In this document: positions 8,656 to 64,000 of the stretch, piece after piece
How the letters are laid out: each line of letters begins with the position of its first letter
Numbering within the stretch: position 1 is the stretch's first letter
Sequence record: NC_019407.1
Length of the DNA: 64,000 nucleotides
Strand: one strand, 5' to 3'
Translations under genes and position numbers: made by a program
Notes under the pieces: generated by a model
What the model saw: only the letters and a program-made list of their open reading frames with translations
What the model was told of the DNA's origin: nothing
The model's database searches: none

Positions 8656-8663
8656 GAGGACCC

Positions 8664-9291: not shown

Positions 9292-9533
9292 TGCAGAGGA
9301 CCCTCCATTCGACCGGCCAGGAACTCTCGGTCAAGTTCAAGTTCCCCAATGAAAACCTGACCTTGACCGTGCATGCCGAACAGGACAGCCCGATGGCGTT
9401 CCTCTGGGTCGAAGGTCGCTCGGTCGACTATTTCGAGAAGCTCCTGAGCTTCGAGCCGGCCGATCTCGATCTCTTGATCGCCACCCTGTCCGAGGCGCGC
9501 AAGATGATCCGCGAGCGCGAGCCGCAGGTCTGA
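9291..9533 (+). CDS. hypothetical protein
   Basis: TGATG overlap chain. Confidence 0.75.
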   Translation: MQRTLHSTGQELSVKFKFPNENLTLTVHAEQDSPMAFLWVEGRSVDYFEKLLSFEPADLDLLIATLSEARKMIREREPQV

Positions 9534-9534
9534 C

Positions 9535-9789
9535 ATGCTGACCAAGGACGAGATCACCTTCGCGGGCCTGATCAAGGCCATGGAGGACGCCCGCCGCACC
9601 GCCAAGGCGGCGGGCGATCTCGTCAGCACGGCCGAGATCGACCGCTGGTTCAAGGAACACGCGCCGATCATCCGGGAGGTCCGCGACAAGGCCGAGGCCG
9701 ACGAATTCGACGCTGGCGCGAGAGTGTTGACAACCTCTGAGGAAGGGGCTAAAGACACCCTCGACGACAGCGAAAGGAGCCTGCCTTGA
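9535..9789 (+). CDS. hypothetical protein
   Basis: 84 aa; the 3' end overlaps the next promoter. Confidence 0.7.
   Translation: MLTKDEITFAGLIKAMEDARRTAKAAGDLVSTAEIDRWFKEHAPIIREVRDKAEADEFDAGARVLTTSEEGAKDTLDDSERSLP
9727..9771 (+). promoter_or_regulatory. class-B promoter cassette
   Basis: TTGACA-N17-TAAAGA-N7-GACGACAGC, then AAGGAG. Confidence 0.8.
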
Positions 9790-10805
9790 CCGACTTCCCG
9801 ATCATCCGCGCCGCCATCTCGCCCCGCCGGGCCGCCCAATTCGACGCCGCCCTGGCGAACGTGAAGGCCTTCACCGAGGAAGGCGTCCTGATCAAGGCCG
9901 AGTGGAACGACATCAAGGACACGTTCAGCCGCGCGATCGCCGAGACCTGGGACGCGTTCAAGGACAAGGAATACTACCCCCGCGCCCGCCAGGGCGAGCA
10001 CGAGAACGTCGGCAAGCTCTACTGGGAGCTTCTGAGCCCCTACCCCCATGTCCTGGCCGGCTATCTGAAGAAGGTCCAGAACGCCAAGAACATCGAGCCG
10101 GCGATCCTGCGCGACTTCCCGATCGCCTTCTTCAGCGAGGCCCTGCCGCTCAACGACATGCTGGTCGCCCTGAAGCCGCTGATCGGCAAGCGCGCGCCGA
10201 AGAAGACCAAGGTCCAGATCGAGCGCGAGGGCAAGGAGCGGACCTGTCAGGTCTGCGGTCGCGGCATCCTGGCCGAGAACGGTCGGATCGCCCACCATGG
10301 CTATCAGCGCCCCGGCATGGGCTATCAGACCCCCTCGTGCAGCGGCGCCCTGGAACTGCCCTTCGAGATCAGCCGCGACGCCCTGGGCGCCGACATCGAA
10401 AACCTCAAGGCCTATCGCGCCCGCCGGCAGACCTATCGCTCCGACGTCAACCTGGAACTGGTCAGCCTGCCGGTCAAGTATCAGGTCTCCGAGCAGGACC
10501 CGCGCCGCGCGCCGGGCTTCAAGCACGTGGTCGACAAGATGATCCACGTCACCCGCGCCGACTGGGACGCCCAGAAGGCCGAAACCCCCGAGGCCTTCGC
10601 CGGCAAGTACGGGCCGCGCAAGCCCAACTACACCTACGAGCCCTTCACCTTCGACGCCCTGAAGGCCCAGGTCCTGGGCGTGGTCGACGGCGAGATCGAG
10701 TTCATCACCGGCACGATCCGGGCGCAGCAGAAGCGCTATGACGACTGGAAGCAGACGATGGAGTTCGTCGATGGCCAGTACCGGATGCTGGAGGTCGCGG
10801 CTTGA
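9786..10805 (+). CDS. hypothetical protein with a putative Zn-binding motif
   Basis: 339 aa, TTG start; CQVC...HHG...C motif. Confidence 0.82.
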   Translation: MTDFPIIRAAISPRRAAQFDAALANVKAFTEEGVLIKAEWNDIKDTFSRAIAETWDAFKDKEYYPRARQGEHENVGKLYWELLSPYPHVLAGYLKKVQNAKNIEPAILRDFPIAFFSEALPLNDMLVALKPLIGKRAPKKTKVQIEREGKERTCQVCGRGILAENGRIAHHGYQRPGMGYQTPSCSGALELPFEISRDALGADIENLKAYRARRQTYRSDVNLELVSLPVKYQVSEQDPRRAPGFKHVVDKMIHVTRADWDAQKAETPEAFAGKYGPRKPNYTYEPFTFDALKAQVLGVVDGEIEFITGTIRAQQKRYDDWKQTMEFVDGQYRMLEVAA

Positions 10806-48774: not shown

Positions 48775-48809
48775 TTGACAGTCGTTGATCACGACGCTAG
48801 ACGTCGTGA
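48775..48809 (+). promoter_or_regulatory. promoter with a palindrome centred on the -10
   Basis: TTGACA-N17-TAGACG; TCACGACG-CTAGA-CGTCGTGA. Confidence 0.7.
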
Positions 48810-48831
48810 ATCTTGACATACGCCCGTCTGC

Positions 48832-52100: not shown

Positions 52101-54833
52101 GTGAGCTACTATCCGATCGAGGACCGCGCCAAGGCCCGGTCCGTCGTCAAGAACCTGCTGGACCTTCAGCGCGAGGCGGTCAAGGCCTCGCGCGGCGGCC
52201 TGATCCTGCCGCCCGACCAGAAGGCGATCATCACCCAGGTCACCGAGACCGAGGACCCGGCCCGCTGGGTCGATCTGCTGGGTCAGTTCGCCGATCGCGT
52301 CCAGACCGATCACCTCGCCCGGCTCAAGCCCCTGGCCAAGCACGACTTCAACGCCTTCTGCGAATACGTCAATCCCGAGGAGGCCCCGGCCTCCAAGTGG
52401 CACGTCTACCTGACCTCGCTCCTCCAGGAGATCGAGAACAACCACGAGCTTGAGCGCTTCGTGCTCAACTGCCCGCCCGGTCACGCCAAGCCGCTCGACG
52501 TCGACACCGAGGTCCTGATGGCCGACGGGTCCTGGAAGCGCCTGGGCGACATCGAGGTCGGAGAATACGTGGTCGGCGAGAGCGGCGCGCGTTGCAAGGT
52601 CACCGCCGTCCATGAGCAGGGCGATCTCGCCACCCTGAAGATCACCACCGCCCACGGCCGCCAGATCATCGCCGCCCCCGACCACGCCTTCCGGGTCGGC
52701 GCCACCTGGAAGGAGGCGGGCAAGCTGCGGCCGGGCGACGCGCTGTCCGTGGTCGGCGCCGCCAACCTCAACTACGACGCCAGCGGCAAGACCATCGATC
52801 ACTTCGAGCTTGCCGCCTACCTCCAGGCCAAGGGCGGACGCTCCTACTTCCACCGCGTCCACAAGAGCGGGCCGAAGACCTACCGCAACGTCTTCCTGTG
52901 GACCTCCGACCACCGCGAGGCCAGCAAGATCAGCGCCTGCCTCAAGCGCCTGGGGATCGCCTTCAAGGGGCGCCTCGCCAAGCATGAGCAGGTCTGGAAG
53001 ATGCGGCTCGCCACCGAATGGGGCGACGCCCTGGCCGAGGAGTACGGCCTGGACGCGCGGATCGACGCGCGCCGGGTTCCGGCCTTTGTCACGAAAGGTG
53101 ACGAGGAGCAGATCGCCCGCTACCTGTCGACCTACACCTCTCTGGCCGGCGAGGCGCCTGACCGCTACACCATCGCGCGCATCATCCTCTACTTCAAGAA
53201 CCCGGCCTTCGCCCGCGACATCCAGCGCCTGTTCGCCGTGGTCGGCGTCAACGCCCGCATCGAGGGGCGCAAGACCGGCCGCACCCGGCTGATCCTGTCG
53301 GGGCCGGACCTGGAGGCCTACTTCGCCGCCGGCCTGACCTACACCGGTCCCAACGCCGACAAGCTCGACGACAAGCGCGCGGCCTTCCCGACCGCGCCCT
53401 CGCTGCTGGCCGACACCGTCACCTGGATCGAGCCGCACGCCGTGCGCCCCTGCCGCTGCCTGACCGTCGAGGACGAGCACACCTTCATCGCCGAAGGGGT
53501 GGTGGTCCACAACTCGACCTACGCCTCGCGCCTGTTCGTGGCGTGGCGCCTGGGGCGCGATCCGCGCCAGAAGATCATCGGCGGGGGCCACTCCCAGCGC
53601 TTCGTCGAGAACGAGTTCTCCGGCAAGATTCGCAACCTCGTGCGCACCCCGCAATATCGCGACGTCTTCCCCGACGTGGTCATCGACCACGCCACCTCGG
53701 CCAAGGACATGTGGGCGATCGCCGGGCACGGCGGGCAGTACGCCGCCAAGGGCGCGGGGCAGGCCATCCACGGTCTGCGCGCCCACTTCGTCTGCGTCGA
53801 CGACCCCTACCGGTCGATCGAAGTGGCCGAGTCCGCGATCGAGCGCGAGAAGATCAAGACGTGGTTCTTCGGCGACGTTGGCTCGCGTTTGTTGCCGCTC
53901 GCCAAAGTATTCCTCATCATGACGCGCTTCCATGAGGAAGATTTGACCGGGGAGATCATCAAACTCAACCAAGAAGTTCTTACCGGCGCCGACCGTTATC
54001 ACATCGTTGAAGCGCCCGCCCTGTGCTACGACCCCGAGAACGACGTCCTGGGCCGCGCCCTGGGCGAAGTTTTGTGGGACTACTATGACTTGCATTATTT
54101 CAAGCGCAAGCGGTCCGAGTGGAAGTACCAAAGATTTGCTTTGGTTTATCAACAACTTGCCGACGCGGCCTCGGACACCTCCATCGCGTCCAAGTTTCAG
54201 ACCTATGATCACCTGCCGCACCTGGAGCCGAAGGTGCTCAAGGCCCGGCTTGACGCGGGTCACGCCGACGAGCGCGGGCGGCCGATTCCGGACCGCAAGG
54301 AGCACTTCCGGCGGGTGGTGGTCAGCGTCGACTCGGCCAACAAGCCCGGCGCCCGCAACGACTACAGCGTCGCCCAGGTCTGGGGGGAGACCCACGCCCG
54401 CAAGCACTACCTGATCTACCAGGAGCGCAAGAAGGTCGACATCACCGGCCTGACCGAGATGATCGAGCGGGTGGCCAAGCGCTACGAGGTCGACGCCATC
54501 CTGGTCGAAGACAAGGGCAACGGCACCGCCTACATCCAGGCGCGGGGCCAGACCGACAGCCAGCGGCGGCTCGCCCCGGCCCCGATCGAGGCGATCCAGG
54601 TCCCGAGCACCTATTCCAAGGAGTTCCGCTTCAACGAGATCGTCCCGATGATCGAGGCCGGCGAGGTCTTCCTGCCGGGCAAGGCCCCGTGGCTCGACCT
54701 GCTGATCCGCGAAATCGGTCAGTTCCCCGAAGGCGCCCATGACGACCAAGTCGACGCCATGACGCAGTACCTCCGCTGGGCCAAGTCCAAGCGCACGCGG
54801 TTTGGCGCGCGCAAGGTCGGCTCGATGGGCTGA
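52101..54833 (+). CDS. terL: terminase large subunit (intein-containing precursor)
   Basis: Walker A PPGHAK|ST, Walker B VCVDDP, IMTRFHEED, and nuclease motifs SVDSA, LVEDKGNG and HDDQVDA. Confidence 0.95.
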   Translation: MSYYPIEDRAKARSVVKNLLDLQREAVKASRGGLILPPDQKAIITQVTETEDPARWVDLLGQFADRVQTDHLARLKPLAKHDFNAFCEYVNPEEAPASKWHVYLTSLLQEIENNHELERFVLNCPPGHAKPLDVDTEVLMADGSWKRLGDIEVGEYVVGESGARCKVTAVHEQGDLATLKITTAHGRQIIAAPDHAFRVGATWKEAGKLRPGDALSVVGAANLNYDASGKTIDHFELAAYLQAKGGRSYFHRVHKSGPKTYRNVFLWTSDHREASKISACLKRLGIAFKGRLAKHEQVWKMRLATEWGDALAEEYGLDARIDARRVPAFVTKGDEEQIARYLSTYTSLAGEAPDRYTIARIILYFKNPAFARDIQRLFAVVGVNARIEGRKTGRTRLILSGPDLEAYFAAGLTYTGPNADKLDDKRAAFPTAPSLLADTVTWIEPHAVRPCRCLTVEDEHTFIAEGVVVHNSTYASRLFVAWRLGRDPRQKIIGGGHSQRFVENEFSGKIRNLVRTPQYRDVFPDVVIDHATSAKDMWAIAGHGGQYAAKGAGQAIHGLRAHFVCVDDPYRSIEVAESAIEREKIKTWFFGDVGSRLLPLAKVFLIMTRFHEEDLTGEIIKLNQEVLTGADRYHIVEAPALCYDPENDVLGRALGEVLWDYYDLHYFKRKRSEWKYQRFALVYQQLADAASDTSIASKFQTYDHLPHLEPKVLKARLDAGHADERGRPIPDRKEHFRRVVVSVDSANKPGARNDYSVAQVWGETHARKHYLIYQERKKVDITGLTEMIERVAKRYEVDAILVEDKGNGTAYIQARGQTDSQRRLAPAPIEAIQVPSTYSKEFRFNEIVPMIEAGEVFLPGKAPWLDLLIREIGQFPEGAHDDQVDAMTQYLRWAKSKRTRFGARKVGSMG
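52491..53513 (+). mobile_element. intein (341 aa) with a degenerate LAGLIDADG domain
   Basis: Starts PLDVDTEVLMADGSWKRLGDI; block B APDH; block F CRCLTV..EHTF; ends VVHN followed by Ser+1. Confidence 0.92.
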
Positions 54834-54905
54834 CGAGGCCCGTTAACCACGTTTGTTAACCTCCGCCGGGGCCTTAACCCTAACACGGCGAGGGTTAACA
54901 GGCCA

Positions 54906-55066
54906 GGGACCCTTCGAAATTAACCTTTCGGGGACCCTGGGAAATCGTAAGGCGGGGACCCTGGCCATTTTCCGCCTGGGGACCCTCCAAAATTCACCGT
55001 CGGGGACCCTGGGAAATTCATCTTCCGGGGACCCTGGCAAATTCAAAGCCGGGGACCCTGGCGAAT
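54906..55066. repeat. 7-copy tandem array with a 24-25 bp period (core GGGACCCT..AAT)
   Basis: Cores at 54906, 54931, 54955, 54979, 55003, 55028 and 55052. Confidence 0.93.
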
Positions 55067-55067
55067 C

Positions 55068-55271
55068 ATGGAGCCGACGATGGCCGGATTTCTCAACCTG
55101 ATCCCGAACCTCGCGCCGTTCGCGCTTTGGGGAATCCTCCTCTGGATCGCCGCCGAGGTGGTCTGGAGCGTCTGCCTCTGGGTCTATGGCCTGCGAACCC
55201 TGTTCAAGCTGCACCGTGACGATGTGGCCGAGGCCCTGACCCTGGAGCGGGCTCTGGCGCCGTTCGACTGA
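55068..55271 (+). CDS. small membrane protein
   Basis: Hydrophobic FALWGILLWIAAEVVWSVCLWVY. Confidence 0.62.
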   Translation: MEPTMAGFLNLIPNLAPFALWGILLWIAAEVVWSVCLWVYGLRTLFKLHRDDVAEALTLERALAPFD

Positions 55272-55340
55272 CCCAAGTCACGGACTGTAGGTTTCGTGAC
55301 AAGGTGAGATATTCCACAACGATTTCAAAGGCTTACTGCG

Positions 55341-55589
55341 ATGTCGATCCGCACGTTCTTCCACGATCTGGCCGTCCGTTTCGTCGTTTTGGGGTGGATT
55401 TTTGCCCGAAAACCGCTGAAATGGGCTCCAAAAGGGCATAATTTTCAGCCCAAACCGCCGGTCCAGGTCGGCGCCCTGGCGGCCGGCTCGCTCCTCGCCC
55501 TCAGTCTGGCGCTCGGCGGGCTCTGGTTCCGCTTCACGTTTCCGGACAAAAGTCAAGTGGTCTCGCGCCGGCCGCAGGCTATGTCATAG
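55341..55589 (+). CDS. small membrane protein
   Basis: Two hydrophobic segments. Confidence 0.55.
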   Translation: MSIRTFFHDLAVRFVVLGWIFARKPLKWAPKGHNFQPKPPVQVGALAAGSLLALSLALGGLWFRFTFPDKSQVVSRRPQAMS

Positions 55590-55650
55590 ACCGTGGGCTT
55601 CGTGACCAGATCACGCTTCCGTTACCGCTCCAGCCCTTGTGAGGCCTCGG

Positions 55651-55755
55651 ATGTTCGCCTTTCTCCGCCGGCTCAGCCTCGCCGCCGTCCATGGCGTGCT
55701 CTGGGCGATCCTCCTGGCGATGTACGCCGTGGGCGGGCCGCGCCGCGCGCCCTAA
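55651..55755 (+). CDS. 34-aa hydrophobic peptide (not in the ORF track)
   Basis: Hand translation MFAFLRRLSLAAVHGVLWAILLAMYAVGGPRRAP; GAGG upstream. Confidence 0.5.
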   Translation: MFAFLRRLSLAAVHGVLWAILLAMYAVGGPRRAP

Positions 55756-55807
55756 AGCGCCATATCTGACGCCTAAGGCCCCCTAAGGCCTCATCTGTGA
55801 GACATTC

Positions 55808-55843
55808 AACGCCCTCGTGTTCCTCTGAACGCGGGGGCGTTTT
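55808..55843 (+). terminator. Rho-independent terminator
   Basis: AACGCCCTCGTGTTC-CTCT-GAACGCGGGGGCGTT followed by TT. Confidence 0.7.
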
Positions 55844-55951
55844 GACGTCGGCGCATTTTTGACTTGACGCGCGAGCGTTTTGACGCGGGCGCATTTTCGA
55901 TTCGACGCGCGAGCGTTTTGACGTCCGAGCATTTTTCAACTTGACGTCGTT
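55837..55951. repeat. 3 x 38-bp tandem repeat
   Basis: GCGTTTTGACG..GCATTTT..(C/T)T(T/C)GACG units at 55837, 55875 and 55913. Confidence 0.88.
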
Positions 55952-55975
55952 CCATTTACCGGGAGCGCCTTAGGG

Positions 55976-56142
55976 TTAACGCCGGCCGCCGAGCCCTGGG
56001 GCGATTTACCACCGCCACGTTAACCTAACGCCTGTTAACCTATCGGTTGTTAAGGTTAACGCCCCGTTAGGGTTAACGCCCCTTAACCCTGCCCGCGTTA
56101 AGGTTAACGCGCCCGCCGCCCGGCCCTACCCGTTAACCTTAA
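55976..56142. repeat. TTAA/GTTAAC cluster
   Basis: 11 TTAA in 167 bp, including GTTAAGGTTAAC twice and its reverse complement once. Confidence 0.8.
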
Positions 56143-56194
56143 CCGCCAGACCCCCGCGCCCAGGCCCTACCCGGTAGGGCCTGACGGCCCTACC
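56122..56194. repeat. GGCCCTACC x3 with a perfect inverted repeat
   Basis: Copies at 56122, 56163 and 56186; GGCCCTACC-C-GGTAGGGCC at 56163-56181. Confidence 0.75.
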
Positions 56195-56253
56195 GGGTAT
56201 GACCCCGCGCCCCGGCGGAGGCCAGGGACCGCCCCGGCGCTTTTTCGCGCCCG

Positions 56254-56285
56254 TTTACCTTTTGTTAACGTCTGGCCTCTAGGGT
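56254..56285 (+). promoter_or_regulatory. CtrA-box promoter P1
   Basis: TTTA-N7-TTAA-N11-TAGGGT. Confidence 0.75.
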
Positions 56286-56333
56286 CGCCCTTGTCCCCGC
56301 CGCACTCCCGCGCCGGGCAAGGAGCTTCCCGCC

Positions 56334-56519
56334 ATGGTCCCCGACTCGATCATGAACCCCCGCGACCACTTCCACCGCCTGCGCGAGGAAACCGCCCGCG
56401 CTCTGGTCGAGGCCTTCGCCGAAACCGACCCCGGCGAGGATTACCGCGCCGAGGAAAAGGCCGGCGCGTGGGTTGTCGCCTATTACGACGCGGCGGGCGA
56501 ATTCGTCGCCTATCTCTAA
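56334..56519 (+). CDS. small hypothetical protein
   Basis: SD AAGGAG after P1. Confidence 0.75.
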   Translation: MVPDSIMNPRDHFHRLREETARALVEAFAETDPGEDYRAEEKAGAWVVAYYDAAGEFVAYL

Positions 56520-56543
56520 CCGCCTTCGCCCCCTGGCGCCGCG

Positions 56544-56575
56544 TTAACGGTTTGTTAACATGTCGGCGCCAGGGT
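56544..56575 (+). promoter_or_regulatory. CtrA-box promoter P2
   Basis: TTAA-N7-TTAA-N11-CAGGGT. Confidence 0.75.
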
Positions 56576-56618
56576 CGCCCTAGCCCGGCGCGTCGCCGCG
56601 CCTTCGGAGAAAACCGCC

Positions 56619-57422
56619 ATGCTCTACACCCCCGCCGCCCGCCGCCTTCGCGGCTATCGCGAAACCGCCGCGAAGAACGCCGAAATTCACGCCCGCCCGC
56701 ACATGGCCGGCAACGTCGCCGGCTACAACGAGTCGGTGTGGCCGACGACGGCGCTAGGCGTCGCCGCCAAGGCCGGCGCCTTCAAGCGCCCCGAAACCGC
56801 CGGCAACTGGTCGGAGGATCGCAAAGCCTATTACGCCCCCGCGTGGCCGGCCGGCTGGCGCGTGCTGGGCACGGCCGAAGAGGTCTGCCGCAAGGAAGGA
56901 TCGCGCCGGGTGGAACATTCCGGATGGTACACGACGCCCGACGACTACAGCGCCACGCTTTCGGGCTATGTGCTGCAAATCCCCGCCCGCGACGGGGTCG
57001 CCCAATACGTCGCCGGGACCGCCCATAGTGAATGGGACGGGGTGACCCTCTACCCCGCCGACCGCTACGACAACCCGCTTGACGCGGCGAGCGCCGCCGA
57101 CCGTCACGCCGAACGCGACGCCGAAGAGGAACGCGAATATCAAACCGCGTGGCAAGCGGGCCAGCGCTACGCCGAACTCGGCGCCGAAGCCAAGGAGGCC
57201 CGCAAGGAAGCGCTGGCGATCCTCGCCGAACGCCGCAAGGTCAAGGGGCTGGAAACCCCCGCCTTGTGCGGCGCGATCCGGGCGCAGGTCGAGGCCCTGC
57301 TAGGCCGGATCGAAGAGGCGCGCGAGGCCCGCGCCAAGCTCAAGGAAGGCGAGGATTCGCGCCTCATGTTCTACCCCTCCGCCCGCCTCGTCGCGGCCTT
57401 CAATGACGGGGCGGCCGGGTGA
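56619..57422 (+). CDS. hypothetical protein
   Basis: SD GGAG; 267 aa. Confidence 0.82.
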   Translation: MLYTPAARRLRGYRETAAKNAEIHARPHMAGNVAGYNESVWPTTALGVAAKAGAFKRPETAGNWSEDRKAYYAPAWPAGWRVLGTAEEVCRKEGSRRVEHSGWYTTPDDYSATLSGYVLQIPARDGVAQYVAGTAHSEWDGVTLYPADRYDNPLDAASAADRHAERDAEEEREYQTAWQAGQRYAELGAEAKEARKEALAILAERRKVKGLETPALCGAIRAQVEALLGRIEEAREARAKLKEGEDSRLMFYPSARLVAAFNDGAAG

Positions 57423-57628
57423 AGGTCGCCCGCGACGCCTTCGCCGTGTTCTGGACCCTCCCCGCCGGAGGGGTCCAATTTCATGCGGACATGAAACGGG
57501 CGCTCTACCCGACCGCCCGCGACGCCGCCCGCGCTTTTCGCGCCATGTTCCCCCGTGACCGCGTTCGGAGCGTCCGCGACGCCTCCGGCCGCTTCCTGGC
57601 CTTCAAGGAGTCCAACCCGTGCGCCTGA
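57419..57628 (+). CDS. hypothetical protein
   Basis: GTGA overlap. Confidence 0.68.
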   Translation: MKVARDAFAVFWTLPAGGVQFHADMKRALYPTARDAARAFRAMFPRDRVRSVRDASGRFLAFKESNPCA

Positions 57629-57900
57629 CTAGCTACAACGTCAACGGAACCGGCTTTAAGGGCGGCTCCGCCCCGCCCGTCCCCGCCCAAGGCCTGACCG
57701 GGCACGCCGACGGCTTGAACCTTTGGGTTCCCTCGCGCGAGCATATCGCCGCCATGCTCCCGCAACGCTGGCGCCACGCCTTCGCCCACGCGGCGTTTTG
57801 GTATGACGCGCACGACAACAAAAAGCCGTGCCGCGCCGACCTCTACGACTCGCGCGGCCGGTACCTGACTCAGGTCTGGGCGCACCCGGTTTTCAGCTAG
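57619..57900 (+). CDS. hypothetical protein
   Basis: GTG start after AAGGAG. Confidence 0.7.
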   Translation: MRLTSYNVNGTGFKGGSAPPVPAQGLTGHADGLNLWVPSREHIAAMLPQRWRHAFAHAAFWYDAHDNKKPCRADLYDSRGRYLTQVWAHPVFS

Positions 57901-57906
57901 GCCAGG

Positions 57907-57941
57907 ACGCCCCGGAAGATTTTCCGGGGCGTTTACCTTTT
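57907..57941 (+). terminator. Rho-independent terminator overlapping P3
   Basis: ACGCCCCGGAA-GATT-TTCCGGGGCGT followed by TTACCTTTT. Confidence 0.8.
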
Positions 57942-57963
57942 GTTAACTTCTGGCCTCTAGGGT
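57932..57963 (+). promoter_or_regulatory. CtrA-box promoter P3
   Basis: TTTA-N7-TTAA-N11-TAGGGT. Confidence 0.78.
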
Positions 57964-58021
57964 GACTTTCGCCGCCGGGCAATCCCGCCCGCCGGACCCT
58001 CTTTCAAGGATTGCTCCCGTC

Positions 58022-59074
58022 ATGACCTCTCATTCCATGGTCGCGCACCGTTGGGCGCAGGACGACGAGAACGGCCGCACCGCGCGCGGCTTCAACATGT
58101 ATTTCGAGCGCTACGGGCGCGGCGCCGACCGCGTCAACGTGATTTTTTCCTACGGGACTCACTTCCCGGCCGCCGCCTTCGTGACCGACGCGCACGGCCG
58201 CCGCGTGGTCCTCTACACGACGCACCGCCGGAGCGTTTCGACCGCGAAACACCTTTCCCACATCCGCCACGCGATTCCGTCGGGCGTGCCGGTGTTTTCC
58301 GTGCCGAACGTGTCGCGGATGCACAAGCCGGGCGGCGCGGGCGACTTCCACGGGGACAACCTGCGCGCCTATATCGAGAGCGCCGCCGGCCTCGCCGAAA
58401 AGGCCAAGCGCGCCCGCGTCAACGGCCCTTGGCTGCTTAGCCAAGCCCGCGACCAACTCGCCGAAGCGCAACGCTACGCCGACGCCTTCAAGGTCAAGGG
58501 CTTCAAGGTCCCGGCCTTGGAAGACGTCGCCGGCCAATGGGCGAAGATGACGGCCGCCAAGGCGCGGGCCGAAGCCAAGGCCCGCAAGGAAGCCGAAAAG
58601 CGCGCCCGCGAAGCCCGCGAAGCCGAACGGCTCGCCGACGCCGAAGCCTTCGCCGCTTGGATGCGCGGCGAGCGCCAGAGCGCCCCGTTTAGCTACCGGG
58701 TGCGCGATGACGGGACCGTCTATCTTCGCCGCTTCCGGGGCGTGGTCCGCGACCTGCGCAGCCAAGAGCGCGACGGCTCGCGCGTCGATGAACTGCAAAC
58801 CTCGCAAGGCGCGGCCGTGCCGTGGGAACACGCGGTCAAGGCCTTCCGGTTCATCAAGCTTTGCCGCGAACGCGGCGAGAGCTTCCACCGCAACGGCCGG
58901 GTGATTCGCGTCGGACACTTCCAAGTTGACGCGATCAGCCCGAACGGGGACATGACGGCCGGTTGCCACCGGTTCGCGTGGGATGAAATCGAACGCATCG
59001 CCAGGGCCGAAGGGGTTTTCGACCTCCCCGCCGACGCCGGCGCCGTCGAAACCCGGCAAGCCGAACCGGCCTAA
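58022..59074 (+). CDS. hypothetical protein
   Basis: Start moved to MTSHSMV after AAGGA; IFSYGTHFP motif; coiled-coil centre. Confidence 0.82.
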   Translation: MTSHSMVAHRWAQDDENGRTARGFNMYFERYGRGADRVNVIFSYGTHFPAAAFVTDAHGRRVVLYTTHRRSVSTAKHLSHIRHAIPSGVPVFSVPNVSRMHKPGGAGDFHGDNLRAYIESAAGLAEKAKRARVNGPWLLSQARDQLAEAQRYADAFKVKGFKVPALEDVAGQWAKMTAAKARAEAKARKEAEKRAREAREAERLADAEAFAAWMRGERQSAPFSYRVRDDGTVYLRRFRGVVRDLRSQERDGSRVDELQTSQGAAVPWEHAVKAFRFIKLCRERGESFHRNGRVIRVGHFQVDAISPNGDMTAGCHRFAWDEIERIARAEGVFDLPADAGAVETRQAEPA

Positions 59075-59092
59075 GCCTCCCCGCCCCTCTCG

Positions 59093-59119
59093 CGCCCCGG
59101 CTCCCCGCCGGGGCGTTTT
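59093..59119 (+). terminator. Rho-independent terminator
   Basis: CGCCCCGG-N7-CCGGGGCG-TTTT. Confidence 0.82.
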
Positions 59120-59129
59120 CGTGTACGCG

Positions 59130-59161
59130 GTAACCTTTTGTTAACTTCTGGCCTCTAGGGT
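59130..59161 (+). promoter_or_regulatory. CtrA-box promoter P4
   Basis: GTAA-N7-TTAA-N11-TAGGGT. Confidence 0.75.
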
Positions 59162-59209
59162 GACTTTCGCCGCCGGGCAATCCCGCCCGCCGGCCAAGGA
59201 TCGCAGACT

Positions 59210-59509
59210 ATGAATCTTTTCGTTGTCGCCATTGACCCCGCCCTCATCCCTTCGGCCGCCGGCTTTGTGGTCGCCTCCCCCTACGGGTGCGGCAAGTGGC
59301 GCGCGTGCGTCGGGAGCGAGGCGGACATGATCGCGCTTCGCGACAAGATGCGCCGCGCGCACCCGGCCCCGGAAGGCTACAGCGTCCAGCCCCTGGCGTC
59401 GTTCCTGGCCTATCTGGAGACGGTCGGGCAAAGCCCTTATGACCAGTTTCGCGCCCGCGACGCCGCCGCCCGCATCCTTGACACCCTGACAACGCACCTC
59501 GCCGCCTAG
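59210..59509 (+). CDS. hypothetical protein
   Basis: SD AAGGA after P4. Confidence 0.78.
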   Translation: MNLFVVAIDPALIPSAAGFVVASPYGCGKWRACVGSEADMIALRDKMRRAHPAPEGYSVQPLASFLAYLETVGQSPYDQFRARDAAARILDTLTTHLAA

Positions 59510-59518
59510 CCCCGCCTA

Positions 59519-59548
59519 GCCCCCGGCCGCGCGCCGGGGGCGCTTTTC
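59519..59548 (+). terminator. Rho-independent terminator
   Basis: GCCCCCGG-N7-CCGGGGGC followed by GCTTTT. Confidence 0.7.
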
Positions 59549-59568
59549 CCTCGAAAGGATCGCCGACC

Positions 59569-59877
59569 ATGACAACCCGTCTTATCGCCGTTCGCGCGCC
59601 GACCGCCGCCGAACTCGCCGACCCGTCCAGCCGCGCGGGCGGCGCCGAAGTCGTCTTTGTGCGGCGCGACCGCGAAGGCCGCACGCGCCTTGTGTTCGCC
59701 GCGACCTGCTACGGCTCATATCAGCAATGGGGCGAAACCCGCGACGTGCTCGCCGACAACGTCGAGGCGGTCACCGTCTGGGCCGAAGGTATGGCGGCCG
59801 TCGCCGACCTCATCGACGAGGACGACGATTTCGAGGGCGACGACGCCCCGGCCGAAGACGACGACGGGGAGGCGTGA
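59569..59877 (+). CDS. hypothetical protein with an acidic tail
   Basis: SD AAGGA. Confidence 0.78.
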   Translation: MTTRLIAVRAPTAAELADPSSRAGGAEVVFVRRDREGRTRLVFAATCYGSYQQWGETRDVLADNVEAVTVWAEGMAAVADLIDEDDDFEGDDAPAEDDDGEA

Positions 59878-59880
59878 GCC

Positions 59881-60300
59881 ATGCGCACAACCAAGGCTCA
59901 ACGCTTCGCCGCCATCGCCTTTGACGCCCTGGCCAAGGCCCTAAGCGAGCCGCGCCAAGCCGTCGCCCGCGTGACCAAATGGGAGGGCGCGGGTCATAGC
60001 TTCGCCAACCTGCAACGCGATTATGAGCGGTACGGCCCCGGCTCGCGCTCATGGTTCGGCCGGGCTGAAATGCGCTTCTTTGGGACGCGCCTAGAGGCCG
60101 CGCCGCTGGATTTCCCGGCGCTGGGCTGCACCCTCTTTCTGACCTCCGAAACCCCGCCCGGCGCCGGCCGGGTCTGGACCCTTCGCGCCTATGTCTGGGC
60201 TTCGGCCGATATCACCACGCTAACCCATGGCGACGAAACCGACGCGGCGACCGCGCAAGCGGCCTTTGACCTGCTTTGGAGGGTCCTTTCGCAGCGGTAA
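59881..60300 (+). CDS. hypothetical protein
   Basis: SD GGAGG; the stop codon lies in the P5 box. Confidence 0.75.
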   Translation: MRTTKAQRFAAIAFDALAKALSEPRQAVARVTKWEGAGHSFANLQRDYERYGPGSRSWFGRAEMRFFGTRLEAAPLDFPALGCTLFLTSETPPGAGRVWTLRAYVWASADITTLTHGDETDAATAQAAFDLLWRVLSQR

Positions 60301-60328
60301 CCTTTTGTTAACTTCTGCCCGCTAGGGT
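60297..60328 (+). promoter_or_regulatory. CtrA-box promoter P5
   Basis: GTAA-N7-TTAA-N11-TAGGGT. Confidence 0.75.
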
Positions 60329-60376
60329 CTTCTTGCGGCCGGGCAATCCCGCCCGGCCGCCCAAGGATTGGACCGC

Positions 60377-60649
60377 ATGACCCGCGCTCAAGCCCTCGCC
60401 GAAATGAACGCCCTTCCCGGTATCATCGCCTCCTTTGAGCGCGAGACGGGTGAATATCGCGTCACCCTGCGCTTTGGTCCGCTCCCCATGGGGCGCGGCG
60501 CCCAAGAGTGGATGCACGCGCGCCGCGAAGCCGTCGCCAGCTACAGCGACGACAAGGCCGACGCCCTGGCCACCGCCCGCGACATGTCCGCCCGCTGGGA
60601 GGCGATGAGCGCCGAAGAGCGTTCGCGCCTCTATCATAACCCCGCCTAA
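60377..60649 (+). CDS. hypothetical protein
   Basis: ATG 9 nt after AAGGA. Confidence 0.78.
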   Translation: MTRAQALAEMNALPGIIASFERETGEYRVTLRFGPLPMGRGAQEWMHARREAVASYSDDKADALATARDMSARWEAMSAEERSRLYHNPA

Positions 60650-60715
60650 AGCCCCGCGCGCCGCCCTGGCCTTCGCCGGGGCGGCTCCCTCAACCCCTCG
60701 CAAGGATCGCACCCC

Positions 60716-61000
60716 ATGACCGCCCGTAAGCCCCTGACCAAGGAACAAAAGGCCCGCCGCCGCGCGACCCGTCGCGCCGCCCGCCTCAACTGGTCGGATG
60801 AGCGCCGCGCTCGCGAATTCGAGCGTCAAGCCCGCTTCTTCCTGATGATCGCCACCCACGCCCAAGGCGCCGGCCAAGGCCAGGAAGCCGCCCGCCTCGC
60901 CACGGTCGCGCAACGCAAGGTCACAAACTGGCGCATGGCGCAGGCCTGCGCCCGGATTAACGCCCTGGCCGCGCATCCGTTCGCGGCCGTGGTCGCCTAA
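60716..61000 (+). CDS. Arg-rich hypothetical protein
   Basis: SD AAGGA. Confidence 0.75.
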   Translation: MTARKPLTKEQKARRRATRRAARLNWSDERRAREFERQARFFLMIATHAQGAGQGQEAARLATVAQRKVTNWRMAQACARINALAAHPFAAVVA

Positions 61001-61013
61001 GGAGGCCCGCCCG

Positions 61014-61196
61014 ATGACGCACCCTCACGCCCTGGCGCTGATCGCCCTCGCTGAAAAGGTGTTGCCGCTTACCCGGCTGCACCCGCTCGACCAACGCGCC
61101 GCCGCCGTCGATCTAATCGGCGACCTCTACCGCCTCGCCGACGATATCGACGCGACCCCGCAAGCCGCCGCCCTGGCGCAACCGAAGGCCGCCTAA
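61014..61196 (+). CDS. small hypothetical protein
   Basis: SD AAGGAGG. Confidence 0.75.
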   Translation: MTHPHALALIALAEKVLPLTRLHPLDQRAAAVDLIGDLYRLADDIDATPQAAALAQPKAA

Positions 61197-61199
61197 GCC

Positions 61200-61790
61200 A
61201 TGAACCCGAACCGCTACCGCCTCGCGCCCCGCGACCGCTTCAGCCGTGAGCTTTCCGAAACGCTCTATCAGGCGGCCGAAGCCGTCGCCCGCGTGATTCC
61301 GCTCATGCCGGAGTCCGCCCCCGATGAGCGCCGCGCGCTGGGCAAGGTCCGCGCCGACCTTCTAACCCATAGCGCCGGCGCCCTTGTTCCCAAGCCGCCG
61401 GCCGCCGTGCTCGCAACCCTCATTTGGGTTGTCGAGATGGCGCAAGATCGCGCCACAAACGCCGATTTCAACACCGCCCAAGAGGGACTCGACGAACACG
61501 AGTCCCTCGCCTTTGTCGCCGACTGGCTGGAGGCCGAAGGCCTAGACGTGACGCCGATTCGCAACGCGCAACCGTCCGCCGACGCCCTGGCCGAACTCGC
61601 CGCCCGCCGCGACGCCGAACAAGCGGCGCTAGACGCCTTGGAGGCCGAAGCCCTGGCCGAAGCGCCGGGCGACGTGATCACCGACATCTTGCGCCCTTAT
61701 CTGGGCTCCATCCTGGCCGAAACCCACGCCGACGACGTGCTAGACGCCCTCACGCGCGCCGGCTTCCAAATCACCCGCAAGGAGGCCTAA
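61200..61790 (+). CDS. hypothetical helical protein
   Basis: Packed chain. Confidence 0.78.
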   Translation: MNPNRYRLAPRDRFSRELSETLYQAAEAVARVIPLMPESAPDERRALGKVRADLLTHSAGALVPKPPAAVLATLIWVVEMAQDRATNADFNTAQEGLDEHESLAFVADWLEAEGLDVTPIRNAQPSADALAELAARRDAEQAALDALEAEALAEAPGDVITDILRPYLGSILAETHADDVLDALTRAGFQITRKEA

Positions 61791-61795
61791 AGCCC

Positions 61796-62365
61796 ATGAC
61801 CGACTCCGCCAAGATCACCGGCGCGCTCGCGCTACTCGCCGTCGCGGCCGATAATCTCCGCCAAGGCCCGGCCATGTCCAAAGCCGCCGACAACGTCACC
61901 AACGTCTGTAACTACGCCCTGACGCGCGCGGCCATGCTCAAGGCCGCCGACCAAATCGGCGAGGCGCTGGAGGCGCTGGGCGCCCTGCAAGCGGGCGGCT
62001 ATGTGATCGCCCGCCGCCGCGACGTTTTCACCGATGCGGGCGAGAAGCTGGGCGACCTGTTGGCGGCGCTTTATGACGCCGTCCCGAACTACGCCGTAAG
62101 ATCGCAGCGCCTCGCCGACGCCCTGGCCCCGGCGCGAAATTACGTCTATCAGCCCCGGTTCCGGGTCAAGCTGGACGCCGCGCCCGGCGCGCTTTTGACC
62201 GACTGCGACACGGGCGCAACGGTCTATTTCCAGCCGGGCGACGACGCCGACGCCTTCCGGGCCGAATTCGCCCCGTGGGTTCACGCCGCCAACGTGACGG
62301 GCGACGGCGCGGCCCTGGCCTCGATGATGAACCCGACCGCCGAAGAGTATTTCAGCCCCGCCTAA
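61796..62365 (+). CDS. hypothetical protein
   Basis: Start moved to MTDSAK after AAGGAGG. Confidence 0.78.
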   Translation: MTDSAKITGALALLAVAADNLRQGPAMSKAADNVTNVCNYALTRAAMLKAADQIGEALEALGALQAGGYVIARRRDVFTDAGEKLGDLLAALYDAVPNYAVRSQRLADALAPARNYVYQPRFRVKLDAAPGALLTDCDTGATVYFQPGDDADAFRAEFAPWVHAANVTGDGAALASMMNPTAEEYFSPA

Positions 62366-62475
62366 GTCATCATTCCTACCGTCTATGACTTGTCACCGGC
62401 CGAAGTCTTACCCGGTGACAGTCTGGGCAAGTAAAGCTCACTCTGGATTTTATGACTTAGCGCAAAGGATTGAAA

Positions 62476-62550
62476 TTGCTCGAAAAATTCCTAGAAGCTC
62501 ACAAAGTCGTTTTCTGGCTGCTCTTGCTGGCCTGTTTGTGGCGCTTTTAA
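62476..62550 (+). CDS. candidate 24-aa hydrophobic peptide
   Basis: TTG start 6 nt after AAAGGA; MLEKFLEAHKVVFWLLLLACLWRF; atypical AT-rich codons. Confidence 0.35.
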   Translation: MLEKFLEAHKVVFWLLLLACLWRF

Positions 62551-62579
62551 CGGTTTGTTAACCCCTGGCCCTCTAGGGT
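62547..62579 (+). promoter_or_regulatory. CtrA-box promoter P6
   Basis: TTAA-N7-TTAA-N12-TAGGGT. Confidence 0.8.
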
Positions 62580-62633
62580 CGAATTCCCGGCGCGGCAATC
62601 CCGCCGCCCGGCCTTCCTTCGGAGCTTCTGATC

Positions 62634-63080
62634 ATGTTCGCTTCCGTGACCCTTCCCGCCCATGACGCCCAAGGCCTGAGCCTCGAAACCGTCCACATGG
62701 TTTTCGCCCGTGAACTGGCGCAACACTTCGAGCACGTAATTTCCGCCCCCGTGATCGAAAGCTGGACCGACGAGGAAACCGGCGCCGTGCAAGAGCAAGC
62801 CGCCGTTTGCTTCACCGTTTCGGCGACCCCGGCCGCGTGGGAAGCCAAGGGCGGCCGGCTCGCGCGCCGGCTGGAAAACCTCGCCGCGCGCTATGCCGCC
62901 GACTGCGACGCCCCGGCCCTGACTGTCACCCATTGCGACGGGCAAACGGTCTATGTCGGCGCTCTGGAAGCCCTGGCGCGCCCCGCCCCGGTGCAAGGCC
63001 CGACCCGCGCGGCGGACCCGGCTTTCCTCCCCCGCCAGCGTGAAGACAAGGCCGCCCGCTTCGATCGCCTGACCGCCTAG
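62634..63080 (+). CDS. hypothetical protein
   Basis: SD GGAG after P6. Confidence 0.78.
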   Translation: MFASVTLPAHDAQGLSLETVHMVFARELAQHFEHVISAPVIESWTDEETGAVQEQAAVCFTVSATPAAWEAKGGRLARRLENLAARYAADCDAPALTVTHCDGQTVYVGALEALARPAPVQGPTRAADPAFLPRQREDKAARFDRLTA

Positions 63081-63098
63081 CCCCTGGCCTCCCCCTAG

Positions 63099-63129
63099 CG
63101 CACCGCCCCTAGAAAGGCGGTGCGCTTTT
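63099..63129 (+). terminator. Rho-independent terminator
   Basis: GCACCGCC-N8-GGCGGTGC followed by GCTTTT. Confidence 0.78.
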
Positions 63130-63138
63130 CTGTGTCTG

Positions 63139-63171
63139 TTTACTTGTTGTTAAGGAATAGCCTGCTAGTGT
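63139..63171 (+). promoter_or_regulatory. CtrA-box promoter P7
   Basis: TTTA-N7-TTAA-N12-TAGTGT. Confidence 0.72.
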
Positions 63172-63222
63172 CTCCTTGTCGGCGGACGCATCCCGCGCCC
63201 GCCCCTTTCTGGATCGCTTCCC

Positions 63223-63615
63223 ATGGCTCGCCCCTCTGACCTGCTCAACGTCAACGCCGCCCGCGTCCTGGCTTGCCTTGAGCCTATCGCCGCCGCCGCT
63301 AAGACGGCCCCGGCCGCCGACCGCGCCGCCCTTTCCTACCTGCTCGACGCTGGCGAGTATGTCGCCGCGTGGCGCCGCAACCTCACGGAAACCGACCGCC
63401 GCAAGGCCTATGGCGCGGCCTGCGCCGCCGAAGCCCTGGCGCTCGCCAACGCCTATCAGCCCGCCACCCTGCAAGGCGGCGCCGTCCGCCGCGCTCTGGG
63501 CGCCTATGCCGCCGCCCTTAAGGTCCTGCTAGACGGGGAGCCGGTTAAGGCGGTCCGCGCCGCCGAAGGCGCGGCGCTTTCGGTCCGCGCTCGCTACGCC
63601 AACACCCGCCTTTAA
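63223..63615 (+). CDS. Ala-rich hypothetical protein
   Basis: ORF after P7; the stop codon lies in the P8 box. Confidence 0.75.
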   Translation: MARPSDLLNVNAARVLACLEPIAAAAKTAPAADRAALSYLLDAGEYVAAWRRNLTETDRRKAYGAACAAEALALANAYQPATLQGGAVRRALGAYAAALKVLLDGEPVKAVRAAEGAALSVRARYANTRL

Positions 63616-63643
63616 CCTCTTGTTAAGACCTCCCGGCTATGGT
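63612..63643 (+). promoter_or_regulatory. CtrA-box promoter P8
   Basis: TTAA-N7-TTAA-N11-TATGGT. Confidence 0.78.
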
Positions 63644-63669
63644 CGGGAGGTCGCAAGGAGACACCCGAC

Positions 63670-63864
63670 ATGACCCGCCCCGGCCCCGCCTCGCTCTTGA
63701 CCCCGCAAGCCCGTTTCTCGTCGCCGCGCGTCCTGATCCTTCCGGGCGCGGCTCCCATGCCGATTCGCCAGCCGCGCGGCCTTTGCGCCGTCGAGTGCGT
63801 CGCCCTTGGCGTGACGCTGGGCGCGGCGCTCTACCTCGCCGCCCGCGTGTTCGGTCTGGTCTGA
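63670..63864 (+). CDS. small protein with a C-terminal TM helix
   Basis: SD AAGGAG; VALGVTLGAALYLAARVFGLV. Confidence 0.7.
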   Translation: MTRPGPASLLTPQARFSSPRVLILPGAAPMPIRQPRGLCAVECVALGVTLGAALYLAARVFGLV

Positions 63865-63927
63865 CCAGACCCCCGCCCCGCCCCCGGTCGGACCGGTCGG
63901 GGGTGTGTCCCATAATGACACACCCCC
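63854..63927. repeat. cluster of perfect palindromes
   Basis: GTCTGGTC-T-GACCAGAC, CCGGTC-G-GACCGG and GGGGGTGTGTC-CCATAAT-GACACACCCCC. Confidence 0.8.
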
Positions 63928-64000
63928 CGCCACCTAGTATCTTTTTTGATTCGGAGGGACCCAAAGGCCCCCTACGTTAACCATTTTTGGCGGCGCCCCC

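Follow-up and report, generated by a model that had tools for sequence, protein, structure and literature searches.

In class II activation, which is typical of OmpR/PhoB-family activators, the activator box takes the place of the -35 element, as the pho box does for PhoB. The DNA-binding domain of CtrA is OmpR-like (PMC9437464). Of 44 rows examined for mapped full-motif CtrA promoters of C. crescentus, 31 have the first motif base at -38, -39 or -40, including ccrM, fliQ, fliF, divK and ctrA P2 (Zhou 2015, PMC4287350). In R. sphaeroides, the CtrA box reaches to 23-24 nt from the start, with an invariant A at -11. CtrA also acts on phage promoters. Mascolo et al. 2022 (Front Microbiol 13:918015, PMC9437464) reported a gel shift of the phiCbK gp005 and gp018 promoters by phosphorylated CtrA (CtrA~P), which mutation of the box abolishes, and reporters of both promoters that work in C. 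crescentus without infection and lose nearly all activity in ctrA(ts) cells. As reported, the reporter assays used the ctrA(ts) host, and the box mutants served in binding assays only. Their Table S6 already contains all eight sites of phage Magneto described below, and Magneto is labelled in their tabulated data as a member of the low positional entropy group (LPEG).

The core finding, CtrA-dependent promoters in the terminal repeat, Magneto sites included, is therefore already published (PMC9437464), with the same sites, the same promoters and the same reading, in which the phage senses the host cell cycle via CtrA. There, the sites are treated as binding sites only, and no -10 element, start site, hairpin, terminator or operon is mentioned. 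We add the fixed spacing that gives a predicted -38/-39 position, a covarying 5' stem-loop in seven units, and the same layout in 58 units of five phages. The original prediction held the strict cassette design to be new. The layout is real and absent from Mascolo et al., and it is only a modest addition.

The window, a stretch of 64,000 nucleotides from record NC_019407.1, forms the right end of the genome of the Caulobacter phage CcrMagneto; its positions 56000-64000 correspond to JX100812.1 1946-9946 with a 100% match. What had been called a probable terminal repeat is the annotated one (Table 1). The 10-kb repeat holds 48 copies of the sequence TTAAC, and the remaining 54 kb of the window 3.

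Reading the sequence, we found eight CtrA boxes exactly where they had been predicted. Three are perfect TTAA-N7-TTAA matches, against 0 in 100 shuffles, and the other five carry one mismatch. The first half-site is TTTA in units 1, 3 and 7, GTAA in units 4 and 5, and TTAA in units 2, 6 and 8. The predicted spacer between box and hexamer is also borne out, being 12 nt long in units 6 and 7 and 11 nt in the other six. The hexamers are of the TAnnnT type (five TAGGGT, and one each of CAGGGT, TAGTGT and TATGGT). The full pattern of box, spacer and hexamer matches exactly eight times in the window, always on the + strand and inside the repeat; neither the remaining 54 kb nor any of 200 shuffles yields a match. 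Over the ~145 kb that form the rest of the Magneto genome, a loose box occurs only twice. This strongly skewed distribution fits the LPEG phages, whose high-scoring CtrA sites are concentrated in the terminal repeats and are mostly intergenic.

Table 1. Promoter units and genes in the terminal repeat of CcrMagneto (window positions). Start positions are predicted; scores are PSSM scores per site from Table S6 of Mascolo et al. (range over the eight sites 12.2-19.8).
Feature	Position	Strand	Details	Score or source
Direct terminal repeat, right copy	54055..64000	+	9,946 bp; record 1-9946	annotation
Unit 1	56254..56317	+	box TTTACCTTTTGTTAA 56254-56268; 11-nt spacer; TAGGGT 56280-56285; start ~56292; 5' stem-loop 56296-56317, loop ACUCCC	16.0
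gp004	56334..56519	+	61 aa; sole gene of unit 1	annotation
Unit 2	56544..56602	+	perfect box TTAACGGTTTGTTAA 56544-56558; 11-nt spacer; CAGGGT 56570-56575; start ~56582; stem-loop 56587-56602	19.8
gp005, gp006, gp007	56619..57900	+	267, 69, 93 aa; transcription unit 2	annotation
Unit 3	57905..57995	+	terminator hairpin 57905-57934, T-run extending into box; box TTTACCTTTTGTTAA 57932-57946; 11-nt spacer; TAGGGT 57958-57963; start ~57970; stem-loop 57972-57995, loop AAUCCC	16.0
gp008	58037..59074	+	345 aa; sole gene of unit 3	annotation
Unit 4	59092..59194	+	terminator 59092-59116; box GTAACCTTTTGTTAA 59130-59144; 11-nt spacer; TAGGGT 59156-59161; start ~59168; stem-loop 59169-59194	16.8
gp009, gp010, gp011	59210..60300	+	99, 102, 139 aa; unit 4	annotation
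Unit 5	60297..60360	+	box GTAACCTTTTGTTAA 60297-60311, its TAA the gp011 stop codon; 11-nt spacer; TAGGGT 60323-60328; start ~60335; perfect 10-bp stem-loop 60335-60360, folding z -3.4	16.8
gp012 to gp016	60377..62365	+	five genes; unit 5	annotation
Unit 6	62547..62611	+	perfect box TTAACGGTTTGTTAA 62547-62561; 12-nt spacer; TAGGGT 62574-62579; start ~62586; stem-loop 62587-62611	17.9
gp017	62634..63080	+	148 aa; unit 6	annotation
Unit 7	63097..63203	+	terminator 63097-63126; box TTTACTTGTTGTTAA 63139-63153; 12-nt spacer; TAGTGT 63166-63171; start ~63178; stem-loop 63181-63203, loop AUCCC	12.2
gp018	63223..63615	+	130 aa; unit 7	annotation
Unit 8	63612..63652	+	perfect box TTAACCTCTTGTTAA 63612-63626, containing the gp018 stop codon (TAA); 11-nt spacer; TATGGT 63638-63643	13.5
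gp019	63670..63864	+	64 aa; unit 8	annotation

All eight boxes share the strand of their genes and begin 58-105 nt before the start codon. The annotation agrees with the claim that each heads 1-5 small genes, giving 16 genes (gp004-gp019) distributed over the units as 1, 3, 1, 3, 5, 1, 1 and 1. The predicted position after a terminator or stop codon likewise holds: terminator-like hairpins end directly before boxes 3, 4 and 7, and stop codons lie inside boxes 5 and 8. A weak terminator-like hairpin ends at 56251, before box 1, and an internal one follows gp009 in unit 4 (59519-59541).

We found no Pfam match for gp004, only PHROGs of unknown function for gp005-gp007, and no informative family in family searches with gp012-gp016. 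gp008 is one of a family of uncharacterised proteins that is widespread in phages, and its matches in the viral library include DUF8033 proteins; its AlphaFold model (pLDDT 93.9) has no significant PDB match. gp011 carries DUF7447. gp017 is the orthologue of phiCbK gp018, with 142 of 149 translated positions identical, stop included.

The same layout appears in 58 units over Magneto, phiCbK, Swift, Rogue and Colossus, with a spacer of 11 nt in 43 and 12 nt in 15; CcrBL10, Karma and a 308-kb relative share it. The A of the hexamer is invariant in the 58 units, and the last T is kept in 55. We notice that G at hexamer positions 3-5 (TAGGGT) is strongly conserved, which a standard -10 element does not explain. 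An independent repeat finder also recovers the Magneto units, as families D1, D2 and D4, and units 3 and 4 (D2) share 97% identity over 67 nt. Since the units are partly copies of one another, some of their conservation reflects shared descent rather than constraint.

The 11-12 nt spacer together with the TAnnnT hexamer would make this exactly the host-type arrangement. Judged from the sequence, the Magneto box would begin at -38/-39, the same position as in mapped host CtrA promoters, and no -35 hexamer at the standard distance was found in the units. The original prediction of CtrA-box promoters is supported by the published site table and by the phiCbK binding and reporter data, obtained on near-identical sequences. 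The Magneto 56544 region is identical to the phiCbK gp005 upstream region at 101 of 102 positions, and the 62547 region to that of gp018 at 113 of 118; the box, spacer and -10 of unit 6 are those of the assayed phiCbK gp018 promoter. Gel shifts and ctrA(ts) expression, which had been proposed as checks, were thus already in hand from this close relative, covering two of the eight orthologous promoters.

We consider it very probable that the eight units are promoters of the host RNA polymerase holoenzyme activated by CtrA~P. In the proposed mechanism, a CtrA~P dimer would bind the two TTAA half-sites, 11 bp apart, in place of a -35 element, and would recruit or activate polymerase at the weak TAnnnT -10 element lying 11-12 nt downstream. 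Transcription would start ~7 nt after the hexamer, which gives the first box base its predicted position. In seven units, the transcript would open with a G+C-rich stem-loop, followed by a Shine-Dalgarno sequence and then the 1-5 small genes of unknown function, and the units would be kept apart by terminators or by overlap with the preceding stop codon.

That these genes are the first expressed, as had been predicted, finds no support. For all the tabulated host promoters whose full box begins at -38 to -40, activity in swarmer cells (0 min) is never above 0.29 of the maximum, which is reached at 60-140 min (PMC4287350). The published model of Mascolo et al., who assayed the promoters, likewise proposes delayed rather than immediate expression (PMC9437464). 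Immediate firing, in which CtrA~P present in the infected swarmer cell switches the units on at once, is possible but the less probable timing. Swarmer cells are described as rich in CtrA (Gill 2012), and phage RNA already makes up 14% of transcripts at 15 min in mixed cultures. SciP motifs at -60 to -90 are given as the cause of the silencing of host full-motif promoters in swarmer cells, and no full SciP motif (GCGNC-N5-GNCGC) occurs near any unit; the window holds 11 of them versus 12.4 expected, the nearest ~250 nt upstream. SciP, however, is reported to bind CtrA directly as well.

At the predicted mRNA 5' end, seven of the eight Magneto units carry a G+C-rich stem-loop. Over the five phages, it begins 0-6 nt after the predicted start in 55 of 58 units, and the mean folding energy is -14.7 kcal/mol versus -9.0 kcal/mol for random 36-mers of the same repeats (p = 9e-13). 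Compared with dinucleotide shuffles, the Magneto leaders reach modest z values (-0.4, -0.6, -0.7, -1.4, -3.4, -2.0 and -1.6); the DNA is G+C-rich, so much of the leader stability comes from composition. Stem pairs 3-5 alternate between G-C and C-G yet stay paired, with 132 of 150 positions pairing in register versus 50-70 of 150 when the partner arm is slid. Against the variable stem, the loop keeps a conserved sequence, (A)AUCCC. A search of Rfam 15 gave no match at E <= 1 in window positions 54000-64000.

Unit 8 alone among the eight is without this 5' stem-loop. Its inverted repeat at 63627-63652 encloses the -10 hexamer (z -3.7); 9 bp are complementary by reading, and the repeat folds as an 11-pair stem with two further pairs. 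It is kept in phiCbK through a compensatory change from T-A to C-G.

Stabilising stem-loops at transcript 5' ends are known from the E. coli ompA leader and from early RNA of phage SP82 in B. subtilis. The phage units resemble them in placing a stable stem-loop a few nucleotides from the transcript 5' end, which is here predicted. Most likely the stem-loop protects this end from decay, or it may be recognised as an element shared by the units. For stabilisation alone, a conserved (A)AUCCC loop above a variable stem would be superfluous. We raise, tentatively and as an unlikely reading, a shared post-transcriptional control element through which one RNA-binding factor of phage or host would tune or shut off the whole CtrA-driven set. 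If so, recognition of the shared loop would form a second regulatory layer above CtrA, which is undescribed for these phages.

A different view places the function of the boxes on the DNA itself, where they would titrate CtrA~P and disturb the host cycle, or control replication or packaging, with the promoter role secondary. A dense cluster of TTAA half-sites at 55960-56150, without a gene or -10 behind it, fits this view, as do the two copies of the repeat per genome and the comparable TTAA-N7-TTAA clusters in ~350-bp gaps of unrelated metagenomic phages and of phage Delta. The action of CtrA at the host origin offers a model for replication or packaging control. However, titration needs neither strand bias nor fixed spacing, whereas all eight units are co-oriented with their genes, each combining a hexamer at a constant distance with a leader and a ribosome-binding site; two orthologues also drive CtrA-dependent reporters. 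We regard a primarily DNA-directed role as improbable. Recognition of the long conserved unit by a phage-encoded factor or sigma, with partial or incidental likeness to the CtrA box, is highly improbable: conservation does go further than a CtrA box requires (57/58 units keep C as the fifth box base, 56-57/58 keep TTG at positions 9-11, and G-rich hexamers prevail), partly through the unit selection filter and unit copying, but the reporters work in uninfected cells in a CtrA-dependent manner, box mutations remove CtrA~P binding, and TTGTTA lies only 12-13 nt from the hexamer, too close for a -35 element.

CtrA-activated promoters remain our preferred reading, by which a virulent phage ties a gene block to the host's master cell-cycle regulator. 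The timing of these genes in the cell cycle is what the published "lytic deferment" model hinges on, and the base-level picture of the units, with a predicted host-like box position, no SciP motif, terminators and a stem-loop, can guide experiments on that timing.

The units are like host CtrA promoters (PMC4287350) in having a full box, predicted to overlap the -35 region, and in their very probable activation by CtrA~P. The box of the host ccnA small-RNA promoter, TTAACGGTTGCTTAA, matches phage boxes 2 and 6 at all but 2 of 15 positions. Unlike those of the host, the phage boxes are much nearer to the consensus and to each other, with a stereotyped hexamer and leader behind them, and their start positions are predicted where those of the host are mapped. 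As in PhoB/OmpR class II activation, two half-sites with an 11-bp period stand immediately before a weak -10 element. Coliphage T5 offers a parallel at the level of the genome, having a direct terminal repeat of ~10 kb packed with small genes of unknown function and a promoter per group. Pre-early transcription in T5 uses strong constitutive host promoters, whereas the repeat promoters here depend on a cell-cycle regulator; in T5 the repeat genes form a first-step-transfer block that is transcribed first once DNA enters. Gill et al. likewise liken the repeat to that of T5, and the annotation places an A1-like gene in another part of the Magneto genome.

The segment carrying the eight promoter units (window 56000–64000) is 100% identical to positions 1946–9946 of JX100812.1 (Caulobacter phage CcrMagneto, hereafter Magneto). 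A direct terminal repeat is annotated at 1–9946 of this record, and its right copy corresponds to window 54055–64000. The window therefore forms the right-hand end of a genome of 218,929 bp. All eight CtrA boxes of the original prediction are present (see table), which confirms the observation in full. Three are perfect TTAA-N7-TTAA matches, as had been claimed, compared with 0 in 100 shuffles, and of the spacings of 11–12 nt described to the −10 hexamer, six are 11 nt and two are 12 nt. The proposed combination of box and hexamer gives exactly 8 matches, all on the + strand and all within the repeat, with 0 matches in the other 54 kb of the window and 0 in 200 shuffles. TTAAC occurs 48 times in the repeat versus 3 times across the remaining 54 kb of the window, and only 2 loose boxes occur in the remaining ~145 kb of the Magneto genome, fetched as three pieces. 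A repeat finder recovered the units independently.

Positions of promoter units and other elements (window coordinates unless JX100812.1 is named; (-), minus strand)
Feature	Position	Description
Unit 1	56254	gp004
Unit 2	56544	gp005-gp007
Unit 3	57932	gp008
Unit 4	59130	gp009-gp011
Unit 5	60297	gp012-gp016
Unit 6	62547	gp017
Unit 7	63139	gp018
Unit 8	63612	gp019
Tandem array	54929-55066	~5.7 copies of a 24-nt unit containing GGGGACCCTGG
38-nt repeat	55829-55946	three copies, rich in TTTTGACG / TTTTTGACTTGACG; flanked by gp003 and the half-site cluster
Half-site cluster	55960-56150	13 TTAA/TTAG half-sites
Intergenic island	62366-62546	A+T-rich; between gp016 and unit 6
GTCGTGAATCTTGAC copies	48784-48818; JX100812.1 18341, 21287, 32523, 55497, 64390, 77087, 85659(-), 92729(-), 99981(-), 112035	promoter-like 15-mer
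TTAACCAT copies	63977-63984; JX100812.1 18060, 18365, 24841, 64444(-), 85629(-), 96724(-), 99965(-), 106033	ungapped CtrA motif variant

The units head 1, 3, 1, 3, 5, 1, 1 and 1 genes, within the range of one to five given before, and every gene from gp004 to gp019 is annotated as hypothetical. A terminator or stop codon had been described ahead of several boxes. Terminator-like hairpins do end directly 5′ of boxes 3, 4 and 7, and the stop codons of gp011 and gp018 fall inside boxes 5 and 8. In unit 4, a terminator-like hairpin with a T-run (59519–59541) lies between gp009 and gp010 and is followed by no promoter, so that gp010 and gp011 would depend on read-through. We also notice a translation start context, AAGGATCGC-N6-ATGA, repeated ahead of gp009, gp010 and gp013 (59195, 59554 and 60701).

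Searches of Pfam and PHROGs with the 16 unit proteins returned no informative family. The sole Pfam match is DUF7447 in gp011, and the PHROGs matches are all to families of unknown function. PDB sequence searches with gp005 and gp008 gave nothing significant. The fold of gp008 is predicted with a pLDDT of 93.9, and its model has no significant match in the PDB (best E 0.085, TM ≤ 0.18 on query length). All matches to gp008 in a viral library are uncharacterised or DUF8033 proteins, and it has more than 170 relatives in metagenomes. Two metagenomic phage contigs carry a gp008 homologue about 2 kb downstream of a ~350-bp TTAA-N7-TTAA cluster, in the same block of small co-oriented genes.

Scanning the repeats of the related phages phiCbK, Swift, Rogue and Colossus beside that of Magneto revealed 58 units of this design, with a spacer of 11 nt in 43 and 12 nt in 15. 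Their consensus is gcgTTaACcttTTGTTAAgaa.TggccgcTAgggTc, in which some columns are fixed by the selection filter of the scan; in columns free of the filter, C occupies box position 5 in 57/58 units and T ends the hexamer in 55/58. In IMG/VR, the unit was found in Karma, CcrBL10 and a 308-kb relative. Beyond phiCbK-like genomes, the matches are mostly single, lie in A+T-rich contigs and look like chance. The unrelated contig IMGVR_UViG_3300006092_000356 (50% G+C) has three co-oriented boxes at 1356–4300, each with an 11-nt spacer to a TAnnnT hexamer and a ribosome-binding site and ATG 20–30 nt further on, without 5′ stem-loops. This contig suggests that the geometry of box and hexamer is not confined to the phiCbK group.

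A G+C-rich hairpin starts 0–6 nt past the predicted start in 55/58 units. The mean folding energy is −14.7 kcal/mol, versus −9.0 kcal/mol for random 36-mers of the same repeats (p = 9e-13). Against dinucleotide shuffles, seven Magneto leaders reach only z = −0.4 to −3.4, so base composition accounts for part of this stability. Covariation is the stronger evidence. A single MAFFT alignment placed 5-nt and 6-nt loops out of register and was set aside, and pairs were counted by script on a loop-anchored alignment of 14 distinct hairpins. Pairs 1–3 are paired in 14/14; pair 3 is G-C in 6 and C-G in 8, and pairs 4 and 5 likewise flip orientation. In register, 132/150 positions pair, versus 50–70/150 when the 3′ arm is slid by 1–2 nt.

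The stem varies below a conserved loop of (A)AUCCC or a close variant, and other units have unrelated stems, such as GGGCGGCGG-AUCGG-CCGCCGCCC in Colossus. Strand-specific conservation of the loop, with a stem that varies, favours an RNA element over a DNA operator, and we infer that it acts as a 5′ stabiliser or as a recognition element common to the units. In units 3 and 5, the ribosome-binding site contains GGAUUG, a perfect complement of the loop CAAUCC. Pairing of loop and Shine-Dalgarno sequence is not supported among 40 distinct leaders, where the complementarity of own pairs is 2.58 versus 2.30 when permuted (p = 0.07). Rfam has no match within the repeat. Unit 8 is without a 5′ stem-loop; an inverted repeat (63627–63652, z −3.7) encloses its −10 hexamer, and a compensatory change in phiCbK keeps it.

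Another unit type appears in Colossus, at 1888(-), 3453(-), 5076(+) and 8226(-), and in the 308-kb relative (L026/L038). Its post-hexamer sequence contains a conserved GGGCTCTTCGAACCGTAGGGGCG, with a one-base difference at Colossus 8226, and has no ribosome-binding site or start codon in the 60–75 nt after the hexamer. These units, of which the Magneto window has none, may drive small RNAs under CtrA.

Several other elements lie in the repeat. The half-site cluster adjoins unit 1 upstream, with no hexamer or gene behind it. Its half-sites are mostly GGTTAAC in tandem periods of 15 and 17 nt, and a ninth loose full box lies at 56072; Table S6 of Mascolo (PMC9437464) has two low-scoring sites in this region. 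phiCbK, Swift and Colossus retain the cluster, and two metagenomic phages (L049 and L050) have similar clusters of ~350 bp ahead of gene blocks with gp008 homologues. The tandem array, which starts ~95 nt past the stop codon of the large terminase (54833), has a counterpart at this position in phiCbK, Swift, Rogue, Karma and CcrBL10 and could serve packaging or replication as a set of protein-binding sites. The intergenic island shows 90% mean column identity across four phages, high even in Rogue, and its fold is more stable than those of shuffles (z −3.8). Its hairpin GTCACCGG...CCGGTGAC retains pairing in Rogue via a C-G to G-C change, and it also holds an unannotated 58-aa ORF (62385–62561) with a hydrophobic C-terminus. 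A small RNA and a small membrane protein are the two candidate products of the island.

Elsewhere, we notice a second promoter-like element, the exact 15-mer GTCGTGAATCTTGAC, with 11 copies in the unit genome. Each of the ten outside the window precedes, in the same orientation, an annotated gene whose role is in virion structure, lysis or nucleotide metabolism/replication or is unknown (e.g., portal, tail tube, endolysin and nrdA). In at least three copies, an inverted partner (CACGAC-N7-GTCGTG) precedes it, which suggests a dimeric regulator site beside a TTGACA −35 element. The octamer TTAACCAT occurs 9 times in the unit genome, where base composition alone predicts ~1. All copies are intergenic but that at 24841, which overlaps the final codons of gp053, and all share the orientation of the downstream gene but that at 64444, which is on the strand opposite to its neighbours. 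Some lie 7–21 nt past the TTGACA of the 15-mer element. In the host, half-sites over the −10 region repress (Zhou 2015, PMC4287350); by analogy, middle or late promoters of the phage might be further targets of repression by CtrA.

The feature exists and the main reading of it is correct, but it has already been published, both for the phage group and for the CcrMagneto genome itself. In phiCbK-like phages, predicted CtrA sites are concentrated in the terminal repeats (Mascolo et al. 2022, PMC9437464), and all eight Magneto sites are in Table S6 of that study, with scores of 12.2 to 19.8. The CtrA-binding and reporter assays proposed as checks had been run in the close relative phiCbK, with the predicted result: phosphorylated CtrA gel-shifts the upstream regions of gp005 and gp018, box mutation abolishes the shifts, and lacZ fusions of both regions are active in uninfected wild-type cells and almost inactive in a ctrA(ts) strain (PMC9437464). 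The orthologues are Magneto gp005 and gp017, whose upstream regions match those of phiCbK at 101/102 and 113/118 positions, respectively; box, spacer and hexamer are the same, except one spacer base in the gp005 region. PMC9437464 is silent on a −10 element, start sites, hairpins, terminators and operons, and the layout details added here are modest.

The claim that these genes read the host cell-cycle state is supported. That they are expressed first is not: in the part of the Zhou 2015 data (PMC4287350) covered here, the activity of host promoters with a full motif in this geometry is ≤0.29 of its maximum at 0 min and highest at 60–140 min. In the model proposed by Mascolo et al. (PMC9437464), expression waits until the infected swarmer cell has advanced in its cycle. 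RNA-seq of a phiCbK infection time course is public (GEO GSE241057; PMC10688885). The low host activity at 0 min is ascribed to SciP (Zhou et al., PMC4287350). Speaking against a delay, no full SciP motif lies near any of the eight phage units and the motif count is at chance level, so that co-regulation by SciP through the full motif was rejected; the half motif GCGNC is too common in 67% G+C DNA to be informative.

The phage units have no −35-like hexamer at the normal distance of 16–18 nt, and TTGTTA is ruled out as a −35 element, being just 12–13 nt from the hexamer. With predicted starts ~7 nt past the hexamer, the A of TAnnnT falls at −11, and the 11/12-nt spacer makes the box begin at −38 or −39. 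In R. sphaeroides CtrA promoters, the box ends 23–24 nt ahead of the start and A at −11 is invariant. Among C. crescentus full-motif promoters with mapped starts, in the portion of the Zhou 2015 data (PMC4287350) considered, the first motif base is at −38, −39 or −40 in 31/44 rows, including ccrM, fliQ, fliF, divK and ctrA P2. Judged from sequence, the predicted arrangement of the phage units is the same as that of the host, the class II layout in which an OmpR-family activator would stand in for the −35 contact.
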